From contig OZ176053.1 of assembly GCA_964247055.1 (NCBI GenBank), forward strand, positions 4,030,001 to 4,094,000: 64,000 nt of DNA, in the 5' to 3' direction. Within the stretch, counting starts at the first letter, position 1. Each line of letters opens with the position of its first letter. Positions 1 to 60,919 of the stretch are shown one piece after another. A model generated the notes under the pieces. It ran no database searches. It was given only the letters and a program-made list of their open reading frames with translations, and was not told the origin of the DNA. A program made the translations under genes and the position numbers. This DNA comes from Paragordius varius. Lineage: Eukaryota > Animalia > Nematomorpha.

Positions 1-2748
1 AATTTAAATTAGAATTTTAAAAAACTACTGAATGAAACGGTCCCAATTTAAATTTATGCTTCTATCCTGATAAAAATTATATAAATATGCCAATATATCT
101 TCATAAAATTTTGTTAAAACCATCTCAAACTATTTCGACGCCATTTTTTTAAAAAAATTTTTTGCAAAATATCGTCTTCATTTAATTTTAAGGGTAAAAC
201 TAAAGCTAAATTTTAATATAAATTACATCTAACATTGATAAAAATACAAAAAGCGGTTTATTGTGTATTTTTTTTAAATTTGCCATTTGACACATGTCAC
301 GTTGACGAAATTTTACCTTTAGGTTTTAGCTTAAAATATTTAATATCAAATATTTTTGGATAAATTTTTTTTTAAATTTAGGTTTATTTATGTTATATAA
401 GTGCAAAATTTTGCCATGGTTGCGATTCCTTCCATACTTTTTAAAGTATTTGATTTTAAACAAGCCTGGGGTATCCAACTACCCCAATTTGAATCAAAGG
501 ACTAAAATGAGTGTGTTGTATCCAAGTGTTAAGCTTTCAAGTTGCATGTGCAAAAGCCAGATAATTATATCTTTAAAAAAGTGTTTAGTTTAATCGGGTT
601 TGGAGTTGTCAATGCTTTTTATCAAATATAGGGAAAAAAGGTTTGATAATCTAACTTTTAATCAAAATACTATAAAAACTGTAGTTTATTTACAAGATTG
701 ACCTCCGGTAAATATAAATACCTCAATATGTAATTGCGCACAAAAAAGTGAAAGATCATCAAGTGTTAATGAGAGGATGCGCTTTTTGCTATATTTCGGT
801 TTTTTCCTGCTCCCTGCTATTTTTTACATAATAGTTTTATGGGTTTTTTAGTGCGAAGTTGTTGGGTTTTGGTGGCTCCCTCTCATATGTATGATTACAT
901 TTACAGTTAATCACATCTTCTTTTAGACTTTGTAAGTTGACTCTTTTTTGTTTCTGCCTCTCGTTACCAGTCTTTAATTACATGGACTTAATCATATGTT
1001 ATTTAGGCTAGTCCGGTTTGCTCACAAAATAATATTAAGCTTTAGACTTACAATTAACGGTGAGCCATGGACTCATATTGAAACACATATCATGTCCTTG
1101 CAAATATACTATACAGACAATAATCCTTACTGAATATCTCAAACTCAAATACAAAAAACACCTACCACCTCTTTATCATTATACAGTATGATGAAACTAC
1201 CGCATTCTCTCCAATCACCGTTTCTTTTTTCCCATAATAATTTCGAATCCATCACAAACAGTTTTTGCTTTTTGTAGACTGCGTAAAGAAGTGTTCTTTT
1301 CATGACATTGGCAACCATATATTTGGTGAAATACCTCTATATAAAGCAATAATATGATGGCTTCACTTCTTGACTTCTAAAAAGAGTGTGAACAAAAACC
1401 TTAACTAGTTTTTGGATAAAAATTACCTGAAAATTTAATTATTAATTATTTCAACGTAATTTATTTATTTTAAGTAGTTTTAATATAGTAGTTTCTATTA
1501 TTGTTTTCATACAATCAACATTTAAAAAAATATTTGTTATCTCGCTCAGTGAAAATCGACTCTAATATTCAACTGGTTGTGTCTGGTATTGCTTTAATAA
1601 ATTAAACAAAATATGCTTGATAATTCTGAACGCATTTGTATGAAATTTAAATCATTTTTAGTTTCACATCATTAGAAAGTCCGAATTAATCCTAAAAATA
1701 TATATAGTGTTTTGGTCTTTAAACATTGATATATTGTTGGCATAGTTTAACAATTTTTCGGGATTCGATAATTTGTAAATTTTTATATTTTAAAAAATAC
1801 AGGTTTCTAATTTTAATATATCAATGTTGATTTGAAATCGAGACATAATAATAAAAATACTTGGATTTTTTAGTATAGAAAAATAATAAAAACAATCATT
1901 GACATGTTGTTAGATAAAGAACAAGAAATGTATGTTAATAAATATTTAATCACAATTATAAGTTGATAGAAATTAGAAACACATAGACCGAAAATTTTTG
2001 TAAAGGGGACGTTTAAATGGCTTCTTGCCAAGTTGAGTAAAGAATAATTTTTGGCATAAAAAATCGATTTTCATACCTTAAAAAACGAAAAAATGGATGC
2101 CACTTGAATCGACTGCGAAGAGTCGGCTCTACAATATACAGAATTTTTAAGATTTGACATGTTGATTAATAAAAATGCTTAAAGATAAATATTTGAGAAG
2201 TTTAAATTGTTTAGAAACCTGACTTTTTTACCTTTCCCAAATCCACCATTTAAACTCATATTCCCTTAATGCAGCAAAAATCTCATGCTGTGCTACCATG
2301 AAAGGGTAACCACGTGACCAGTCTTTTTAATAATTGGGTGCATATTGACTTAAAGCCGCAGTTTCCCCTCCATAAAAGCTCTTTTGCAATTATTGTTAGA
2401 TCTTAACAAGAACTAGACAAAAGGTCTAGTTAACAGATTATAAAAACGGAAGCCAAACCGAAAGTGGAAATAAAAGAGTAGTTGTTCTGAAGATATTAAC
2501 CAGGACTGCAACATGTACAGTAAATATTTATTTTAAAGTTGTCTCAATTTTTTAAAAACAGATTTACAATTAAGAAGAGGAAGTGTAGTATCGATTTTTT
2601 GCGAATTTTGTTTTTTGGGGGTAGGTTTTGGGATGGAACTCTAAAAATGTTGCTATAAAAATAATTCACGATGATACAGGTACATTCAAAATTTATTACC
2701 AATTATGATAACTGATAAACCATCGGTATATAAAGGTAAGCTTTAGCA

Positions 2749-3767
2749 TAGGGGTGTCAAACAATGGCTTGAAGAGCCACATTGGAATTAATATATCAAG
2801 ACATAAGTATCAAGTATGTTTATTATGTAAACATATATAGATGTGTTAAAAAAAATTTGCTTGATTTGATGTTAAATAGTACGAATATGTGTAAAAACAA
2901 AAAATTTGATGAAATGCATGGACAAATAAAATATTTTTAAATCTTTGATAAAAGCACAAGCATAGAATATATCACAATGAATTTTATACGAGAAATTTGA
3001 TGAATTTTTCACAGAAAACAACTTTTAGCCTACTTAAATTCCTGTTGAACTGTGCATAAAATTTTCAAATTATATTTAATACATATGAAAATATATAAGA
3101 AATATATGTATGGGCTACCGAGTAATAATTGCATTAAAAAATCTGACATCTTAATTAAGATCAATTGTAACAATGAACTGCTTGTTTCACCTAGGTTTGA
3201 ACATATTCCTTTTACAAAGACTCATATAGTTTGAAATGTAGTTATTTTTATATCATCCACTTTAAAGCATAAGCAATTCAACGATCTGAAGAATATTGAT
3301 ATCAAATTGGATATTATTTTTAAATAAATAAATATTTTATTCAATAAACTAAATTGATTTTAATCGAGTATAAAGAGGATTTGGGAATAAAGTAAGCTTT
3401 TTATTTTTTTTAAATATCACTGAGAATATATAACTCTAATAATTTGTGTATTGCTAATTAAAAATGGGATTGTGGTTTTCAAAAATATAACTCTTTCGCT
3501 AAATAATTACCAAATAAAGTTTACCAATGGCAAGTAATCTAAATATTTTCAGACTGTAAAGGAAATTGATTAAGTGAATGTGATAAAAAATAATGAAAAA
3601 CGTATTAAAAAATTTTAAGCAAATCAATTAAAAAATTTTACTTTTAAAAATTTTAAAATATAACATCCCCGCTCAAAAATAAAACTTTCTGCTAAAAAAT
3701 TTTTTATCATTCTTTTTAAAGAGCCACTCAAAATTTTTAAACCGGAACTACCTGTTGGACACCCCTG
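2749..3767. mobile_element. Non-autonomous hAT (Charlie/Buster-like) element
   Basis: Inverted ends TAGGGGTGTCAAAC (2749) and GTTGGACACCCCTG (ending 3767). Subterminal GAGCCAC motifs at both ends. Degenerate 8-bp flanks ctttagca/gtttagag. No transposase ORF. Confidence 0.6.
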
Positions 3768-10600: not shown

Positions 10601-12130
10601 AAGCTGCACAATAAATCAAGGTTTAAATAATTCAACCAATTATTAATTTTTGTAAATGTTTTAGCTTTATGCGTATTAAATGATTTTAGCTGGTTTGTTG
10701 CGCCATCAACCGTAAATGGTTTTTATTCCTTTGTGGGAAACGAAATGAGTATGAATTTTTATATTTTTATTTTAATTATATATATCCATTGCAAAAATTA
10801 TTTTAATAATTTTAAGGGTTTTATAAAATGTACAATAATGGTCAAATACCTGAACAACGGATATTTTGTTAAATGGTTATCAAAAATTTTTGGGAAATTT
10901 TAAAGAAAATATTAGATATTCCTATTCTGATTTTAAATATAAAAAGTGTTCGATAATATATATATAATATTCTAAGTTTTTCCAATTGCATAATGTTCTT
11001 TGTCATACCCTTAAAATTTTTATTTATAAATAGCTGTTTTCCAAATTTTACGATTGCATTTTTTTAAATTTTTTTTAACATAAATATACAACCGTGACAA
11101 TTTTTAACTTAAAAATTATAGTTTTTCCTGCTGGTATCCTGCAATCTCCATTGTATGATAAGGATTTCCCAAAGTATTTTATTATCCAAATAAAATTTAG
11201 ACCATTGAATTATGGCTCAATTGGATTTGTGATTGGTCATGAGCTTACTCATGCATTCGATAGCACCGGTATATTTCCTAAATTTTAATTAAAAACATGA
11301 ATGCTATAATATATAAACCCAAAGGTCGACAATATGATACGGACGGACATCTCTTTCAATGGTGGAATAATAAGACTATACAAAATTTCAAACATAAAAC
11401 TAAATGTTTTCAAGATCATTACTCGTCTTTAGCTGTGGAAGGGTCAAATGTATGTAAATTCATTTGAGAATTATTGATTTGCATTGTAAATTGTTTGTAA
11501 TCATATAAAAGGGAATAACTCTAAAATATTTATGGTGTTTTTTAAGACATTTAAATGGTCTTAGTTAAACGTTGCATAATAAGCAATACATTCGGTGTTT
11601 TGAAAGCTAACCTAAAGCTTATGATTAAATTTAATTTGGGTACGATGATCCATTAATCGTTAATTAAATTAAATGCTTAACACTTTTTCTAGTTATAATG
11701 CAGCTTAAAACTATAATAATATAATGCCAACAAACTTTAAATAATATAATATTGTTAACCGCCACATATTCCTTAAATATATTTTTTTCGGAATTTGAGC
11801 CTAAATTGCTTGAAAAAAGAGTTTAAACAATTTTCCGGTGTTTTTTTAATGAATACTTGTTATCGAATGTCGTATATAGGTTTTAGTTTAAATTTAATCA
11901 AAGTTAGACTGTGACCGCTTGTAAAAATAACCATATAAAACTTTTTAACATATGTTTATCATACTATAATTTAATGTAAAAAAATTATAATAAATAAACA
12001 ATAAATGATTTCATAATTCAATTTTATTTTTTATTATATTTAAAACATTTCCAAATAATTCCAACAGAATGACTGCATTTATAATAGGTCTAACAGTATT
12101 TTTTTCACCGGTCAAAAACCTGACCCTGGT

Positions 12131-12215
<85 letters not shown>

Positions 12216-16810: not shown

Positions 16811-17680
16811 ATGCAAGAAAATCAAATTGTATAATTCTTATCATAATTTTTTAGGAAATGAAAAAATTGTTTGGAAATAATAAATTTTTGATTAATTTTT
16901 GCTCGGATGACACGAATTTTTATAGTTGTAACCACGAATCCAAACCTATTGTTATAAATGTTGGTCATCATTTAGAATTTAAGGTAATAATTGTTAAAAT
17001 TCCGTATAGAGCCTGATTGGTGACTATCATTTAACTGATATACCTGGCCAATTTATATGGAAAGCGGGAGATTTATTTGATGTAAATTTTTTTTGATTTT
17101 TAGGCTATAATACAAGGAAAAACCGTCATACTCAAAAACTTGGAAAATGGAAATTTGGATTTTTTACTTTCATTATATGCCCTTATCAAAGAGAAAACAA
17201 TCTATATTACTCCATTTAAAAGAAAATTCGAATTTAATCCTGAATTTCGGTTATCATGCCAAATAAATAGGTTCAATAAATTAAATTTATATATAGTAAA
17301 GACAAAAAATTTTGTTTCTCCTTTTTGAGTCGATCGATGGATTTATCAAAATATTTCTTGGTAAACTTTATGGAACAACCTACCAGATTTGAACTACAAT
17401 CGGTATTTTATTCGCTTATTCATAAACAATATAATATATATGTTAGAAAATTTTGTTTTTTAAATTTATAGTGTATAAAAGGGGTTAGGTTTATAAATTA
17501 TTTCCAAATAGTATGCATTTTCACCGTTTATGAATGCACATGTGACCACCAATAAAAATCCTTTAAACAATATAACATTTACCATATACAAATTTAATTA
17601 ATTTTAATTGATGTTATCTATATTATTAAAGAATATTAACGACGATTTGAACGGTTAACTTCATTTCGTTTGGTTTATAT

Positions 17681-17720
<40 letters not shown>

Positions 17721-20700
17721 ATATATATATTTATATATCTGTTTCTGATTATAAATAAATTTAAAGTGTAATTTAATTTTTATGTAAATACTATTCACAT
17801 TTCTTACAATGAAAATGATGATTGTGTATGGCCAATTATTGCATAATTGGTTATTATTTTTAATTGCCAAAAAAACCAACCCTATATGCCGTGTATTTTA
17901 AGCATTTCGATATCATTGAGGTATGCTAATTCTTGTATATGTGGTCAGCGGTTTCTATTTGTTTTTATAAAAATGTTATTTGTTCTAATCCATTATGGTA
18001 GATTATATCCACATGTATTTTAGCATTCTGCTTTCTGTTTTTTTCAGTCTTGATTTTAGTGATTTTGTGATAAATTTTGCTGTAGTATGTATTTGATTTA
18101 TACGGTTATGTCCATATGTATAAATACATATTTGAGTTGGTTAAATTTTGTCCTGCCCAATTTGATTCTAATAATTATTTACAATTTATATATATTATTT
18201 AGACCTTTATTTTTGTGTCTTTATAGTGGATTCGATACCTCAATTATTGATGTTTATTTAATTTGAATGATATAGTTGATAAGGCTAAACTTGTATTTTT
18301 TTGAACAAAATCATATTATTTAATCTATTTTAACTCCTTAAATTTAATAACTTTACTCAATTTAGATACATTTTAATATTTACTTGTCATATATATACCA
18401 TTTACAATTCAATTTTACCCTTAAATAATTCAAATTCACCCTTGAACAATTCAAATTCACCCTTGAACAATTCGAATTCACCCTCGAACAATTCAAATTC
18501 ACCCTCAAATAAAATATTGTTTTTTAAGATTAAAAATTACCTATATTTTATATATTATTAAAAAATAAAAATTTTGTAAATTAAAATATTACTGAAAAAA
18601 TATTAAACTATACCATAAACATATATTTCATATTAATAATGAGTTATATTAGTTCAAAAACACATAATTTATTTTTAGGGTGAATTTGAATTGTTCAAAG
18701 GTGAATTTGAATTGTTTTGAATTGTTCAAGGGTGAATTTGAATTGTTGGAGGGTAAATTTGAATTGTTTAACGGTGAATTTGAACTGTAAATGGTATATT
18801 ATATAAATTTGGTTGATAGTAGTTTTTACAGTCCCATCAAAATATCTATCCATTTTTCAATTAATTTTTGATCATAGAAATGTGTTAATCAATTCAAATT
18901 TATCAGTCCGCTTCTTTTGGAATGTTGTTTAGATATCTTTTTCCGTGCGATGGAGTTACACTCAACTATAAATACGCAGATCCATCACCAGAGTTATTAT
19001 CAATCATCCAAGTATAATAGACGATTACTTAAAATTAATCAAATTAATAAAATCTATTTTCATCTTAATCCCTTTTAGATATATTAATACAGTAAAATAC
19101 GATGGCAAAACATTTTGTATTATAAATTATTTTTTATGAGAAAACCTTTTTTAATCCTTATAAATAACACATACAAATGCATGTATGAAATATAAAATTA
19201 ATTGTATATTTTGCAACACAGAAGTTTAGATTAAAAAGGTTTAAGCATCTAACAATATGTTATTTCCCATATATAGAATTTTTTTACTTTTTATGGTCTG
19301 TTATAATTTTAATGTTTACTGTAATATTATATTTCACAGGCTGTTGTTTAAATTTTGCCAACGTATTGATATGCAAAATTTCTTTAAAACGAGACACAAT
19401 GGAAACCTTTTGAATCCTAACCCTGAAATTGATAGCATTACCATATTTTTGAATGCATTTGACACGTTTGTCGGACATATTCGATGTAATGATATGCGCC
19501 TACAATGGGCCATAACTTTGGGGGAACGTTTAAATTTGGATAAAGCGACGGTATAGAATAATTTTTACTATACATCAATAAAATATACCATTTAACAATT
19601 TAAACTCTAAAATAAATCGAGTGTTTTTTAGATTAAAAATTATTTATATTTTTTTATATTTTTAAACAATTAAATTTTGTTTAAAATTAAATAATACTGA
19701 AAAAATAATAAACTATGCTATAAAGATATATTTCATATTAATGATGAGTTACATTAGCCCGAAAACATATAATTTATTTTTAGGGTGAATTTGAATTGTC
19801 TGGGGGAGAATTTGAATTGTGATATATAAATCACTTTTTAACTATTAATGATTAATACTAAAATCTTTTCTAAATTATTTTTATGGTATAATGTACTATT
19901 CTTATGATTTATATTGTATATTTAGTTTATGAGTGATTTTTAAAATGTGAAAAGGTTTGATTGTTTTCATTTTATGGTTCAAAATTTCCGGAGGTTAGAC
20001 TATTTTGTTGTAAAAAAAATAATTGATTAAATTTTTTTCGTTTCCCTAAATTACAGTTAGTTATTATTTAGTTAAATATGAATGTATTAACATAACTTTG
20101 TATGCTTCATAAATTTTTACTCAAAATAAATATAACTTTGTGCTACTTAATTAAAACGGCAAATCCATCGCCTGGTTATATATCTATACCATTAATTTTT
20201 TTTTAATATTAACTCGTATATAGGTAGAACGGTTTGTTGTTAGTTATAAACCCGTATTGGTTTGGAAGAAAAATGGTGTAGTCATCGATAATGGTACCGG
20301 AGATGTATCATTCTACCCATATCAATATATGTGCAATTATTTCTTACCTTTTAACGATTTAAATGGCGAAAATAAGGATAATTGTATTAATGTTAATAAC
20401 GAACTTACCTTTTCTGAAAATATGATGGATGTCGATAAGATTGACGACACTTTACCAGAATTAACTGCGGATTTATTAGATCCATCTAGCGATACGAAAC
20501 GCAATAAACGCAAAAAACGTAGAAAAATGGCATCGACGATGACCACAACCAAAAACTTTTGTTTAACGAAACAAGCTTCACAAGTTATCAGGTAAGAATA
20601 TAGTGGGTTTACCTCATTATGAACCCATTTGTATAAGAAAAATACATGCCCTTATCATTAAGCCTCCAAATAATACAATGCAAAATTTATTTTTGTTTTT

Positions 20701-59555: not shown

Positions 59556-60919
59556 TTATTTTTGCTTTTTAGCGATTCGCCGATCTCTCTCTTCGGCAAT
59601 CGATAATCGAATACCATTGTTCTTTGGTAGAGATACCCAAGGCACGGTACCTTTCCCAATGACAAACACATTGGCCAACCTAACAAATAAATATTAATTT
59701 AGCTCATAAGAAACAAACTCCATGGTATGATAACAAGACGATAAAAATTAACTGACAGTATTCAATAAATTTTTAAATTAATATTCATTTCGAAATTTTG
59801 TGTAAATATATCTCAAAATGTGGTAATTCAAAAAGATTGAAAACAAGGTTGAGTAAAATATCGGAATTGCCAACATAAAAGTAATTAAAATAGGGAAAAC
59901 TAAAGAAATTATCGCAAACTAAAAATAGAAAAAGGTTGTTATCATAACAAATTACAAAAACTACTCCGTATAAATTTAATTATCCATACCTTGTGGCAAA
60001 AGAATGACCCATGGCATCTTTGACATGAACTATATCAAAGGAACCAGGATGTCTTTCTCTGCTCATAATTTGTCCCACTCGACCAATATTGTGTCCAGCC
60101 GTTATCATGCATAAATTTCCTGTAAAGTCATATAAAAAAAATTTTAATTTTTCTAATTTTTCAAGGAAAGCAAATATAGTAAGTTACCAGAATCAAATTT
60201 GATATATTCGGTAATTTTTCCCGTTTCAATGTCAACTTTAACCGTGTCGTTGACTTTGACATTGGGATGTGGATATCTAATAGTTCGACCATCATGTGTA
60301 ACGACAAAAGGAATAGCTTTTGGTCCTACTTTTAATTTTTTTATTTTGCAAAGTTTGTACTAAAATATAAAAGCTATTATACTTTTGCTTCGGCGGGGTC
60401 TATTCTGTGAATTGCAAACCTTCCCTTGGTATCGTATATTAAACGGAAATATTCTCCAGTTTTTTCGATTGTTATGACGTCTAAAATAAAAATATTTACA
60501 AGTTGGGTACTGCTTACAAACTATATAAATTATAAAGCGACCATTAAATGTATTATACTATTGGCTTTTATTGACACTGATAAGCGCGTTGCTTACTAGT
60601 GCTTCGAGAAAGCCTTTAATAAAAAATTACCCATAAAGCCAGCGGGAAATGTAGGATCAGTCCTAACTTTACCATCGATTTTGATGAGACGCTGCATAAC
60701 TATCTTTTTAACCTCATCCCCAGTAAGAGCGTATTTCAAGCGATTTCGAAGAAAAATAATAATTGGCAAACATTCGCGCATTTTGTGCGGTCCAGGGCTG
60801 GGTTTTGGAGCAAAAACCCCGGTAAGTTTATCGAGCATCCAATGTTTAGGAGCATTTAATCTTTTCAAATGTTTCTTAGGTCCTCTTACCTATAAAAGTA
60901 AAAGGCAAATATGTACCAT
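59556..60919 (-). CDS. RPS4: 40S ribosomal protein S4 (eS4), 6 exons, 261 aa
   Basis: Exons (minus): 60919-60917 (ATG only), 60889-60631, 60480-60383, 60359-60188, 60119-59990, 59679-59556 (786 nt). Translation [29 protein letters not shown]...[13 protein letters not shown]...[18 protein letters not shown] matches eS4 along its whole length. Confidence 0.98.
60490..60617 (-). ncRNA. Candidate box H/ACA snoRNA in RPS4 intron 2
   Basis: 128-nt hairpin-hinge-hairpin-tail layout. Hairpin 1: GGCUUU/AAAGCC lower stem and CACUAGUAAGC/GCUUAUCAGUG upper stem. H box AUAGUA. Hairpin 2 closed by UACA/UGUA. AUA (ACA variant) 3 nt from the end. Both pockets are complementary to conserved LSU rRNA segments. 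Confidence 0.75.

Follow-up and report, generated by a model that had tools for sequence, protein, structure and literature searches.

The 64,000-nucleotide (nt) window analysed here (positions 4,030,001 to 4,094,000 of contig OZ176053.1, assembly GCA_964247055.1 of the nematomorph Paragordius varius, with coordinates counted from its first letter) carries on its minus strand a six-exon RPS4 gene (59556-60919), the second intron of which was proposed in an earlier note to contain a small nucleolar RNA (snoRNA) of the H/ACA class with two guide pockets aimed at the peptidyl-transferase region of the large ribosomal subunit. On the strength of folding, target pairing and comparison with homologues, we consider it likely that this intron encodes a genuine H/ACA guide RNA for uridine 3365 (U3365) of the large-subunit (LSU) ribosomal RNA (rRNA), and the predicted RNA is a new, highly diverged one of the SNORA16/snR46 kind.

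The RPS4 gene and its second intron

The gene runs from an ATG at 60919-60917 to a stop codon at 59556-59558, with exons at 60917-60919, 60631-60889, 60383-60480, 60188-60359, 59990-60119, and 59556-59679 (the last including the stop) and introns 1 to 5 of 27, 150, 23, 68, and 310 nt. Exon 2 most resembles animal RPS4, the best match among RPS4 fragments being 87% identical. The combination of such genes with introns as short as 23-27 nt is reminiscent of dicyemid mesozoans. Searches of the 110.6-Mb assembly (44 contigs) found no second copy of either the gene or its intron 2, and both are single-copy. Intron 2 (60481-60630, minus strand, GU...AG) contains the predicted snoRNA with 13 nt to spare on the 5′ side and 9 nt on the 3′ side. 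The GC content of the other RPS4 introns is 0.17-0.26 and that of the window 0.26. Contigs labelled as two other organisms (B and C), of low depth, are letter-identical to the window across intron 2 and probably represent the same species in other samples, and therefore provide no variation to compare.

Introns 5 (59680-59989) and 4 (60120-60187), on the same strand, have no significant fold (z −0.6 and +1.5, respectively) and gave no RNA-family match in a permissive Rfam scan. This bears on the earlier suggestion that the snoRNA explains why intron 2 has stayed at 150 nt: the argument carries little weight, introns 4 and 5 being long too without any snoRNA signal, and the idea, though sensible, is not one that the RPS4 gene demonstrates. 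RPS4 was not covered by a published study of ribosomal-protein introns in sponges.

A predicted guide RNA and its first pocket

The predicted H/ACA snoRNA is 128 nt long (60490-60617, minus strand), with ends inferred from the fold, from a sub-threshold match to the Rfam family TtnuHACA9 at 60490-60616, and from alignment to a metagenomic homologue, L017. In the predicted fold, a first hairpin is followed by an H box (AUAGUA), a second hairpin, and an AUA trinucleotide succeeded by UUU, giving the hairpin-hinge-hairpin-tail layout with a robust hairpin 1 and a hairpin 2 no better than shuffled sequence. The two-hairpin element described earlier (60617-60490, with AUAGUA at 60561-60556 and a closing AUA) thus folds as described and is exact to the base, as are the plus-strand motifs that accompanied it (CTTCGA at 60602-60607, TTTTATTGA at 60566-60574, GACCAT at 60539-60544, and GTTGGGT at 60502-60508).

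Hairpin 1 (60563-60614) consists of a 6-bp Watson-Crick lower stem (60609-60614/60563-60568) and a 4 + 6-bp upper stem that occupies 60575-60601 together with its loop. It has a minimum free energy (MFE) of −18.1 kcal/mol and a z score of −4.37 at a GC content of 0.44, and none of 500 shuffled sequences was as stable. Its internal loop forms pocket 1, with CUCGAAG (60602-60608) as the 5′ guide strand and UCAAUA (60569-60574) as the 3′ guide strand, and the H box (60556-60561; ANANNA) lies 13 nt past the upper stem.

The LSU, 5.8S, and small-subunit (SSU) rRNAs of the host were delimited with Rfam on one unit of the ribosomal DNA (rDNA), and all of their uridines were scanned as potential targets. 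The best partner of pocket 1 was LSU U3365, with 6 + 4(+2) pairs: UCGAAG pairs with CUUCGA (3367-3372) and UCAAUA with UUUUGA (3359-3364, one U-U mismatch), within the target UUUUUGA[UC]CUUCGA, leaving U3365 and C3366 unpaired at the base of upper stem 1, 14 nt from the H box. The target and the spacing proposed in the earlier note, namely the equivalent of yeast Ψ2865 and human Ψ4412 (Ψ, pseudouridine) with the uridine about 14 nt from the H box, are borne out in the host's own 28S sequence, in which the target is intact; the 35-nt LSU segment around it is present in 113 identical rDNA copies in the genome. The equivalent yeast site, 25S Ψ2865, is guided by snR46 (PMC5699541), and the human equivalent, 28S Ψ4412, is 100% modified (PMC6182160).

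Pocket 1 also fits 5.8S U95 nearly as well (CAUUGA[UA]UUUCGA, scoring 10.5 vs 11.0 for the LSU; L005:6261-6415, minus strand). The lineage-specific U of UCAAUAA, mismatched to the LSU, pairs with an A in 5.8S, and U95 adjoins the position aligned with yeast 5.8S Ψ73.

Homologous RNAs in metagenomes

Metagenomes were scanned with a pattern of the hairpin-1 features common to the intron-2 RNA, the Tetrahymena RNA, and the vertebrate consensus, with both stems left free. This returned 31 loci, 28 of which had at most five flush upper-stem pairs; in the other three there were 11, together with a lower stem of 5 bp. Exactly these three stem-bearing loci are recognised by Rfam, which assigns L017 to SNORA16 (35.9 bits, against a cut-off of 35) and matches L021 and L039 to TtnuHACA9 (59.9 and 53.4 bits). 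Over the four RNAs (intron 2, L017, L021, and L039), the guide strands of pocket 1 and the H box are invariant, the AUAGUA of intron 2 aligning with the H boxes of the other three, and 11 of 17 stem pairs of hairpin 1 keep pairing via changes on both sides. A metagenome search with an exact-stem pattern gave no matches.

The L017 RNA comes from the first intron of RPL12 in a non-human animal, so its host is a ribosomal-protein intron too but in a different gene from RPS4. None of the metagenome homologues is flanked by RPS4 exons, and the RPL12 introns of ten other animal contigs contained no copy of the RNA. A second H/ACA-like element occurs in a downstream intron of the same RPL12 gene (L017:5755-5884, minus strand; SNORA57 at 24.5 bits, under the cut-off), which may therefore host two snoRNAs. 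On the AT-rich contig L039, about 400 nt separate the TtnuHACA9-like RNA from a SNORD18 match (135-204, minus strand; 44.4 bits, cut-off 41), which suggests a snoRNA cluster in a ciliate-like organism.

Chance expectation and competing readings of the intron

Motifs, architecture, and Rfam score are each unconvincing alone; it is their combination that is convincing. The genome has 122 occurrences of the guide motifs with a correctly spaced H box, vs 94 for a reversed control, and loose guide-like hairpins, of which the window has about 840, are equally frequent in shuffled sequence. The combination goes beyond chance because the strict pocket-1 architecture, in which the motif comes with an upper stem that is flush over 10 bp or more and with six or more Watson-Crick pairs in the lower stem, is expected only about 4.5 × 10⁻⁴ times per genome.

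No family matched the 64-kb window at Rfam gathering thresholds. A permissive scan of the 64 kb with 4227 families produced snoRNA matches nowhere but on RPS4 intron 2, with TtnuHACA9 first and full-length (60490-60616). The database check suggested in the earlier note is thus split, since nothing exceeds the cut-offs and the sub-threshold SNORA16 and TtnuHACA9 matches do land on the predicted element. Of thousands of initial candidates, genome-wide searches with RF00190 and RF02316 scored 43 and 47, intron 2 not being among them, and so give it no ranking. The window also holds two TA-rich palindromic low-complexity tracts (12122-12204 and 17673-17727), which drew spurious microRNA-family matches on both strands.

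Several of these results weigh against a guide RNA in intron 2. The Rfam scores are well under the gathering cut-offs (29.3 vs 100 bits for TtnuHACA9 and 20.7 vs 35 for SNORA16), and a SNORA16 score of 20.7 bits recurs elsewhere in the genome and is at noise level; loose two-hairpin layouts are as common in real sequence as in shuffled sequence (29-49 loci per strand vs 26-34); the covariation count for hairpin 1 is biased upward because the possession of stems was partly a criterion in selecting the homologues; and the exon-2 search found no RPS4 from a close relative, the 87% match being the best. The possible RNA sequencing runs labelled with the species name (X7 and X8) hold only foreign spliced RPS4, 84% alike; over 60402-60478, their high-depth RPS4 messenger RNA reads DPTYPAGFMD in place of the window's own residues, nothing in them matches the window's gene, and they are probably dominated by another organism, for example a host. 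The runs that do contain the window's sequence are not recorded as RNA.

An intron hairpin that is stable for some other reason, such as bringing the splice sites of an unusually long intron nearer to each other, with an rRNA match that is coincidental or the relic of a dead snoRNA, would accommodate the chance-level frequency of guide-like hairpins and two-hairpin layouts, the sub-threshold Rfam scores, the foreign RPS4 in the RNA runs, and the presence of other long RPS4 introns that lack a snoRNA. We nevertheless regard such a reading as unlikely. It must set aside the rarity of the strict pocket-1 architecture, the sense orientation of the element within a ribosomal-protein intron, and the agreement of both pockets, both boxes, and the spacings with independent homologues, and it leaves the universally modified U3365-equivalent without another candidate guide. 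Among the motif matches inspected in the genome, no other candidate guide for U3365 was found: three competitors (C3:6668431, C1:6633336, and a three-copy repeat at C4:7983649) were ruled out for want of proper stems, and ACA-type patterns for competing guides were counted at or under the level of the control. A calibration search for a guide to the Ψ2880-type site returned only chance-level matches in the genome.

The second hairpin and the peptidyl-transferase loop

Hairpin 2 (60497-60552) has a 4-bp lower stem, UACA/UGUA (60549-60552/60497-60500), and an upper stem of eight AU-rich pairs with one bulge, which spans 60512-60538 with its loop. The 5′ strand of pocket 2 is UUUAAUGGUC (60539-60548), in which AUGGUC can pair with LSU 3457-3462 (GACCGU, one G-U pair), and the 3′ strand is AGUACCCAACU (60501-60511), in which a spacer AGU precedes ACCCA, the complement of LSU 3449-3453 (UGGGU). 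The terminal box is AUA (60493-60495), followed by UUU. AUA would be a tolerated variant of the ACA box, which in this class lies 3 nt from the end of the mature RNA.

Support for this predicted hairpin comes solely through comparison with L017, an independent homologue that had been selected on hairpin 1 only. L017 has the same pocket-2 junctions as the intron-2 RNA (UGGUCGC on the 5′ side and GCAnUACCCA on the 3′ side), and its ACA aligns with the AUA of intron 2, while the stems between these shared blocks are unrelated. The distance from upper stem 2 to the terminal box is 16 nt in the intron-2 RNA, in L017, and in the vertebrate SNORA16 consensus. When position is disregarded, the similarity of the two second hairpins reaches only p = 0.02-0.07; a chance likeness is much less likely than that because the shared blocks sit exactly at structural junctions, and by a rough analytical estimate we would put the chance of blocks so placed at below 10⁻⁶.

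The comparison with L017 also bears on the possibility that the intron encodes a guide of about 60-70 nt made of hairpin 1 alone, with AUA(GUA) as its sole box and the 3′ half of the intron as spacer. Guides of this form occur among the H/ACA-like RNAs of trypanosomatids and Euglena, all of the thermodynamic signal in intron 2 resides in hairpin 1, and the H box opens with an AUA that is correctly spaced from the pocket. Hairpin 2, however, has counterparts of its junction motifs, of its spacing, and of the place of its box in a two-hairpin SNORA16 member, and no single-hairpin H/ACA RNA is known in animals; we hold a lone-hairpin guide to be very improbable.

For the two-hairpin guide RNA, a scan of the host rRNAs with the pocket-2 strands of intron 2 and L017 jointly placed LSU 3447-3462, GCUGGGU[UUA]GACCGU, first with a score of 22.5, followed by 18S CGUAGU[UCU]GACCAU with 21.5, after which the scores dropped to 19. 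The top score was reached in 4 of 150 identical column permutations of both guides (p ~0.03). The vertebrate SNORA16 consensus points to the same loop: all 7 nt of its 5′ strand, GACGGUC, are complementary to 28S GACCGUC, the GGG of the target stands opposite CCC in the intron-2 RNA and L017 and opposite UUU in the vertebrate consensus, and G4508 stands opposite C in the vertebrate consensus and U in the intron-2 RNA, so that the lineage differences in pocket 2 are C/U changes that all keep pairing with a target G. Two further candidate targets were rejected, LSU U1949 since it adjoins a lineage-specific insertion and SSU U1558 since the joint scan gave it no support.

The candidate uridine for pocket 2 is either U3454 or U3455. 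U3455 is the equivalent of human 28S Ψ4502, which is 100% modified (PMC6182160) and for which a guide RNA was still unassigned as of 2021. In the computed pairing, once the spacer is counted, the paired part of pocket 2 starts 13 nt from the box, as it does in pocket 1.

Other results count against a second guide function. Hairpin 2 is no more stable than shuffled sequences (z −0.39), the terminal box (60495-60493) is AUA rather than ACA, and pocket 2 by itself is at chance, its best rRNA score being equalled by 42 of 60 shuffled guides. The pairing is also irregular, with U3454, U3455, and A3456 of the target and a 3-nt spacer of the guide left unpaired; were it genuine, pocket 2 would have escaped standard predictors because of these unpaired nucleotides. 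The earlier dual-guide claim is partly supported, by the conservation of pocket 2 with L017 and by the first rank of the peptidyl-transferase loop among joint targets, and weakened by the irregular geometry and by the rival site in 18S. Weighing these comparisons, we find it an even question whether pocket 2 directs modification of the peptidyl-transferase loop.

Alternatively, the RNA may be a real H/ACA snoRNA in which pocket 1 is the sole guide, hairpin 2 serving the assembly or stability of the ribonucleoprotein and its conserved strands being structural or matched to some other substrate, for example 18S CGUAGU[UCU]GACCAU (U1010/U1011). The GGU and ACC of the pocket-2 strands pair together in the MFE folds of both the intron-2 RNA and L017, the pocket-2 match alone is at chance, and the 18S site comes close to the LSU loop in the joint scan (21.5 vs 22.5) and needs no spacer in the guide; human 18S moreover has adjacent Ψ1045 and Ψ1046, possibly the same UU as U1010/U1011. 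On the other side, the vertebrate 5′ strand GACGGUC fully complements the 28S loop over 7 nt and mismatches the 18S site, a flush pairing with 18S puts the uridine 17 nt from the box and beyond the usual 14-16, and the differences between lineages are C/U changes opposite a G of the 28S loop. A guide with pocket 1 only is thus a possible reading, if a somewhat unlikely one.

If pocket 2 does act on the peptidyl-transferase loop, the irregular 3′ pocket seen in the intron-2 RNA and L017, and in wobble-paired form in vertebrate SNORA16, could be the ancient missing guide for human Ψ4502, a proposal that the sequence comparisons make conceivable and that we nonetheless consider doubtful. Were it true, an orphan pseudouridine would have found its guide in the SNORA16 3′ hairpin. 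The 3′ hairpin of the vertebrate SNORA16 consensus has highly conserved single-stranded GACGGUC and AACAUUUU, and in a flush register the AAC of that consensus could pair with G4499-U4501, giving 7 + 3 pairs around Ψ4502-A4503 in the canonical two-nucleotide geometry.

Proposed mechanism and relation to known guide RNAs

In the mechanism that we propose, the spliced intron would be debranched and trimmed by exonucleases to an RNA of about 128 nt, which would assemble with dyskerin/Cbf5, Nop10, Nhp2, and Gar1; the genome does encode a dyskerin DKCLD domain. Pocket 1, in the internal loop of hairpin 1, would then bind the LSU on either side of U3365. With U3365-C3366 kept out of the pairing, 14 nt upstream of the H box, dyskerin would convert U3365 to pseudouridine (a step in which the pairing is computed and the catalysis inferred). 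Hairpin 2 would be a degenerate, AU-rich form of the conserved SNORA16-type 3′ hairpin, with AUA replacing ACA, and its conserved pocket-2 strands would most likely pair with GCUGGGU[UUA]GACCGU and direct pseudouridylation at U3455 or U3454.

The predicted intron-2 RNA would be a functional, and probably also an evolutionary, counterpart of SNORA16, snR46, and TtnuHACA9. Like SNORA16 (Rfam RF00190, the vertebrate ACA16 family, clan CL00021), it has two hairpins in the H/ACA arrangement and the same 5′-pocket strands (UCGAAGC / GUCAAnAA..CC), directed to the 28S Ψ4412-equivalent; in the 3′ hairpin of both, GGUCGC stands where pocket and stem join on the 5′ side, and the terminal box follows the upper stem by 16 nt; with L017, the SNORA16 member over the cut-off, it has both pocket-2 strands in common. 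It differs from the family in its sub-threshold score, its AU-rich stems, its barely stable hairpin 2, and its AUA in place of ACA, and on the 3′ side of pocket 2 the intron-2 RNA and L017 read ACCCA(A) as opposed to AUUUU in the vertebrate consensus. Because it fails the Rfam cut-offs and has an AUA box, we call it SNORA16-like by function and hairpin-2 homology, not as a curated member. The host genes differ as well: RPS4 for the intron-2 RNA, RPL12 for L017, and, in Xenopus, the non-coding SNHG12 (PMC6984369).

TtnuHACA9 (RF02316), from Tetrahymena, is the best Rfam match and aligns over the full length, sharing the 5′ pocket, the GG/CC of the lower stem, and the H-box spacing; the two ciliate-like relatives, L021 and L039, carry the same hairpin 1. 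Apart from the shortfall in bits, it differs in that hairpin 2 aligns with many non-canonical pairs and that the pocket of the ciliate 3′ hairpin is unrelated (CGGGUG / CUAUCG). The snR46 RNA is independently transcribed, not intronic, and yeast has no Ψ at the U3455-equivalent position. In Saccharomyces cerevisiae snR46 guides the homologous uridine, 25S Ψ2865 (PMC5699541), and the likeness drawn here is one of target site, not of RNA sequence. The nematode H/ACA snoRNA ceN39 (RF01629) has a consensus 3′ hairpin with GGuCGC...GCACaCC at the same junctions, although its 5′ hairpin guides another site (UAGGAA / GCCGACAUC, of the Ψ2880/Ψ4427 type), and this likeness is indirect and weak (20.3 bits, seen through L017).

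In itself, one further H/ACA guide housed in a ribosomal-protein intron would be routine, its target being a pseudouridine that is universally conserved close to the peptidyl-transferase centre. It would mean that a genome with introns of 23-27 nt still uses the intronic route to snoRNAs, and that a very divergent, AT-drifted copy has retained no more than selection requires (guide strands, boxes, and spacings), which in turn exposes the conserved second pocket of the SNORA16 lineage. That pocket is a concrete, testable candidate guide for the orphan human 28S Ψ4502.

Additional observations

The rDNA from which the target sequences were taken forms an array at G000:C2:1.82-3.04 Mb (L001-L005) of at least 113 units spaced about 9-17 kb apart, 47 of them forward and 66 reverse, in blocks whose orientation alternates. 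Pattern searches of the genome assembly (G000) also encountered a dispersed repeat family starting with TCGAAGTAGCCAATGAAGTTAGTAACC in at least nine places (e.g., C1:5179839, C2:3239796, C4:6228523, and C5:12771404), and a second repeat family (TCGAAGGATCCAGGAAACGTGGACGC) occurs in three places in the genome. With regard to the host gene, the metagenomic contig L007 (ENA contig k141_742548), the source of the top match to exon 2, was excluded from the comparisons; it encodes an RPS4 exon of the vertebrate RPS4X type and may be human DNA that entered a metagenome assembly.

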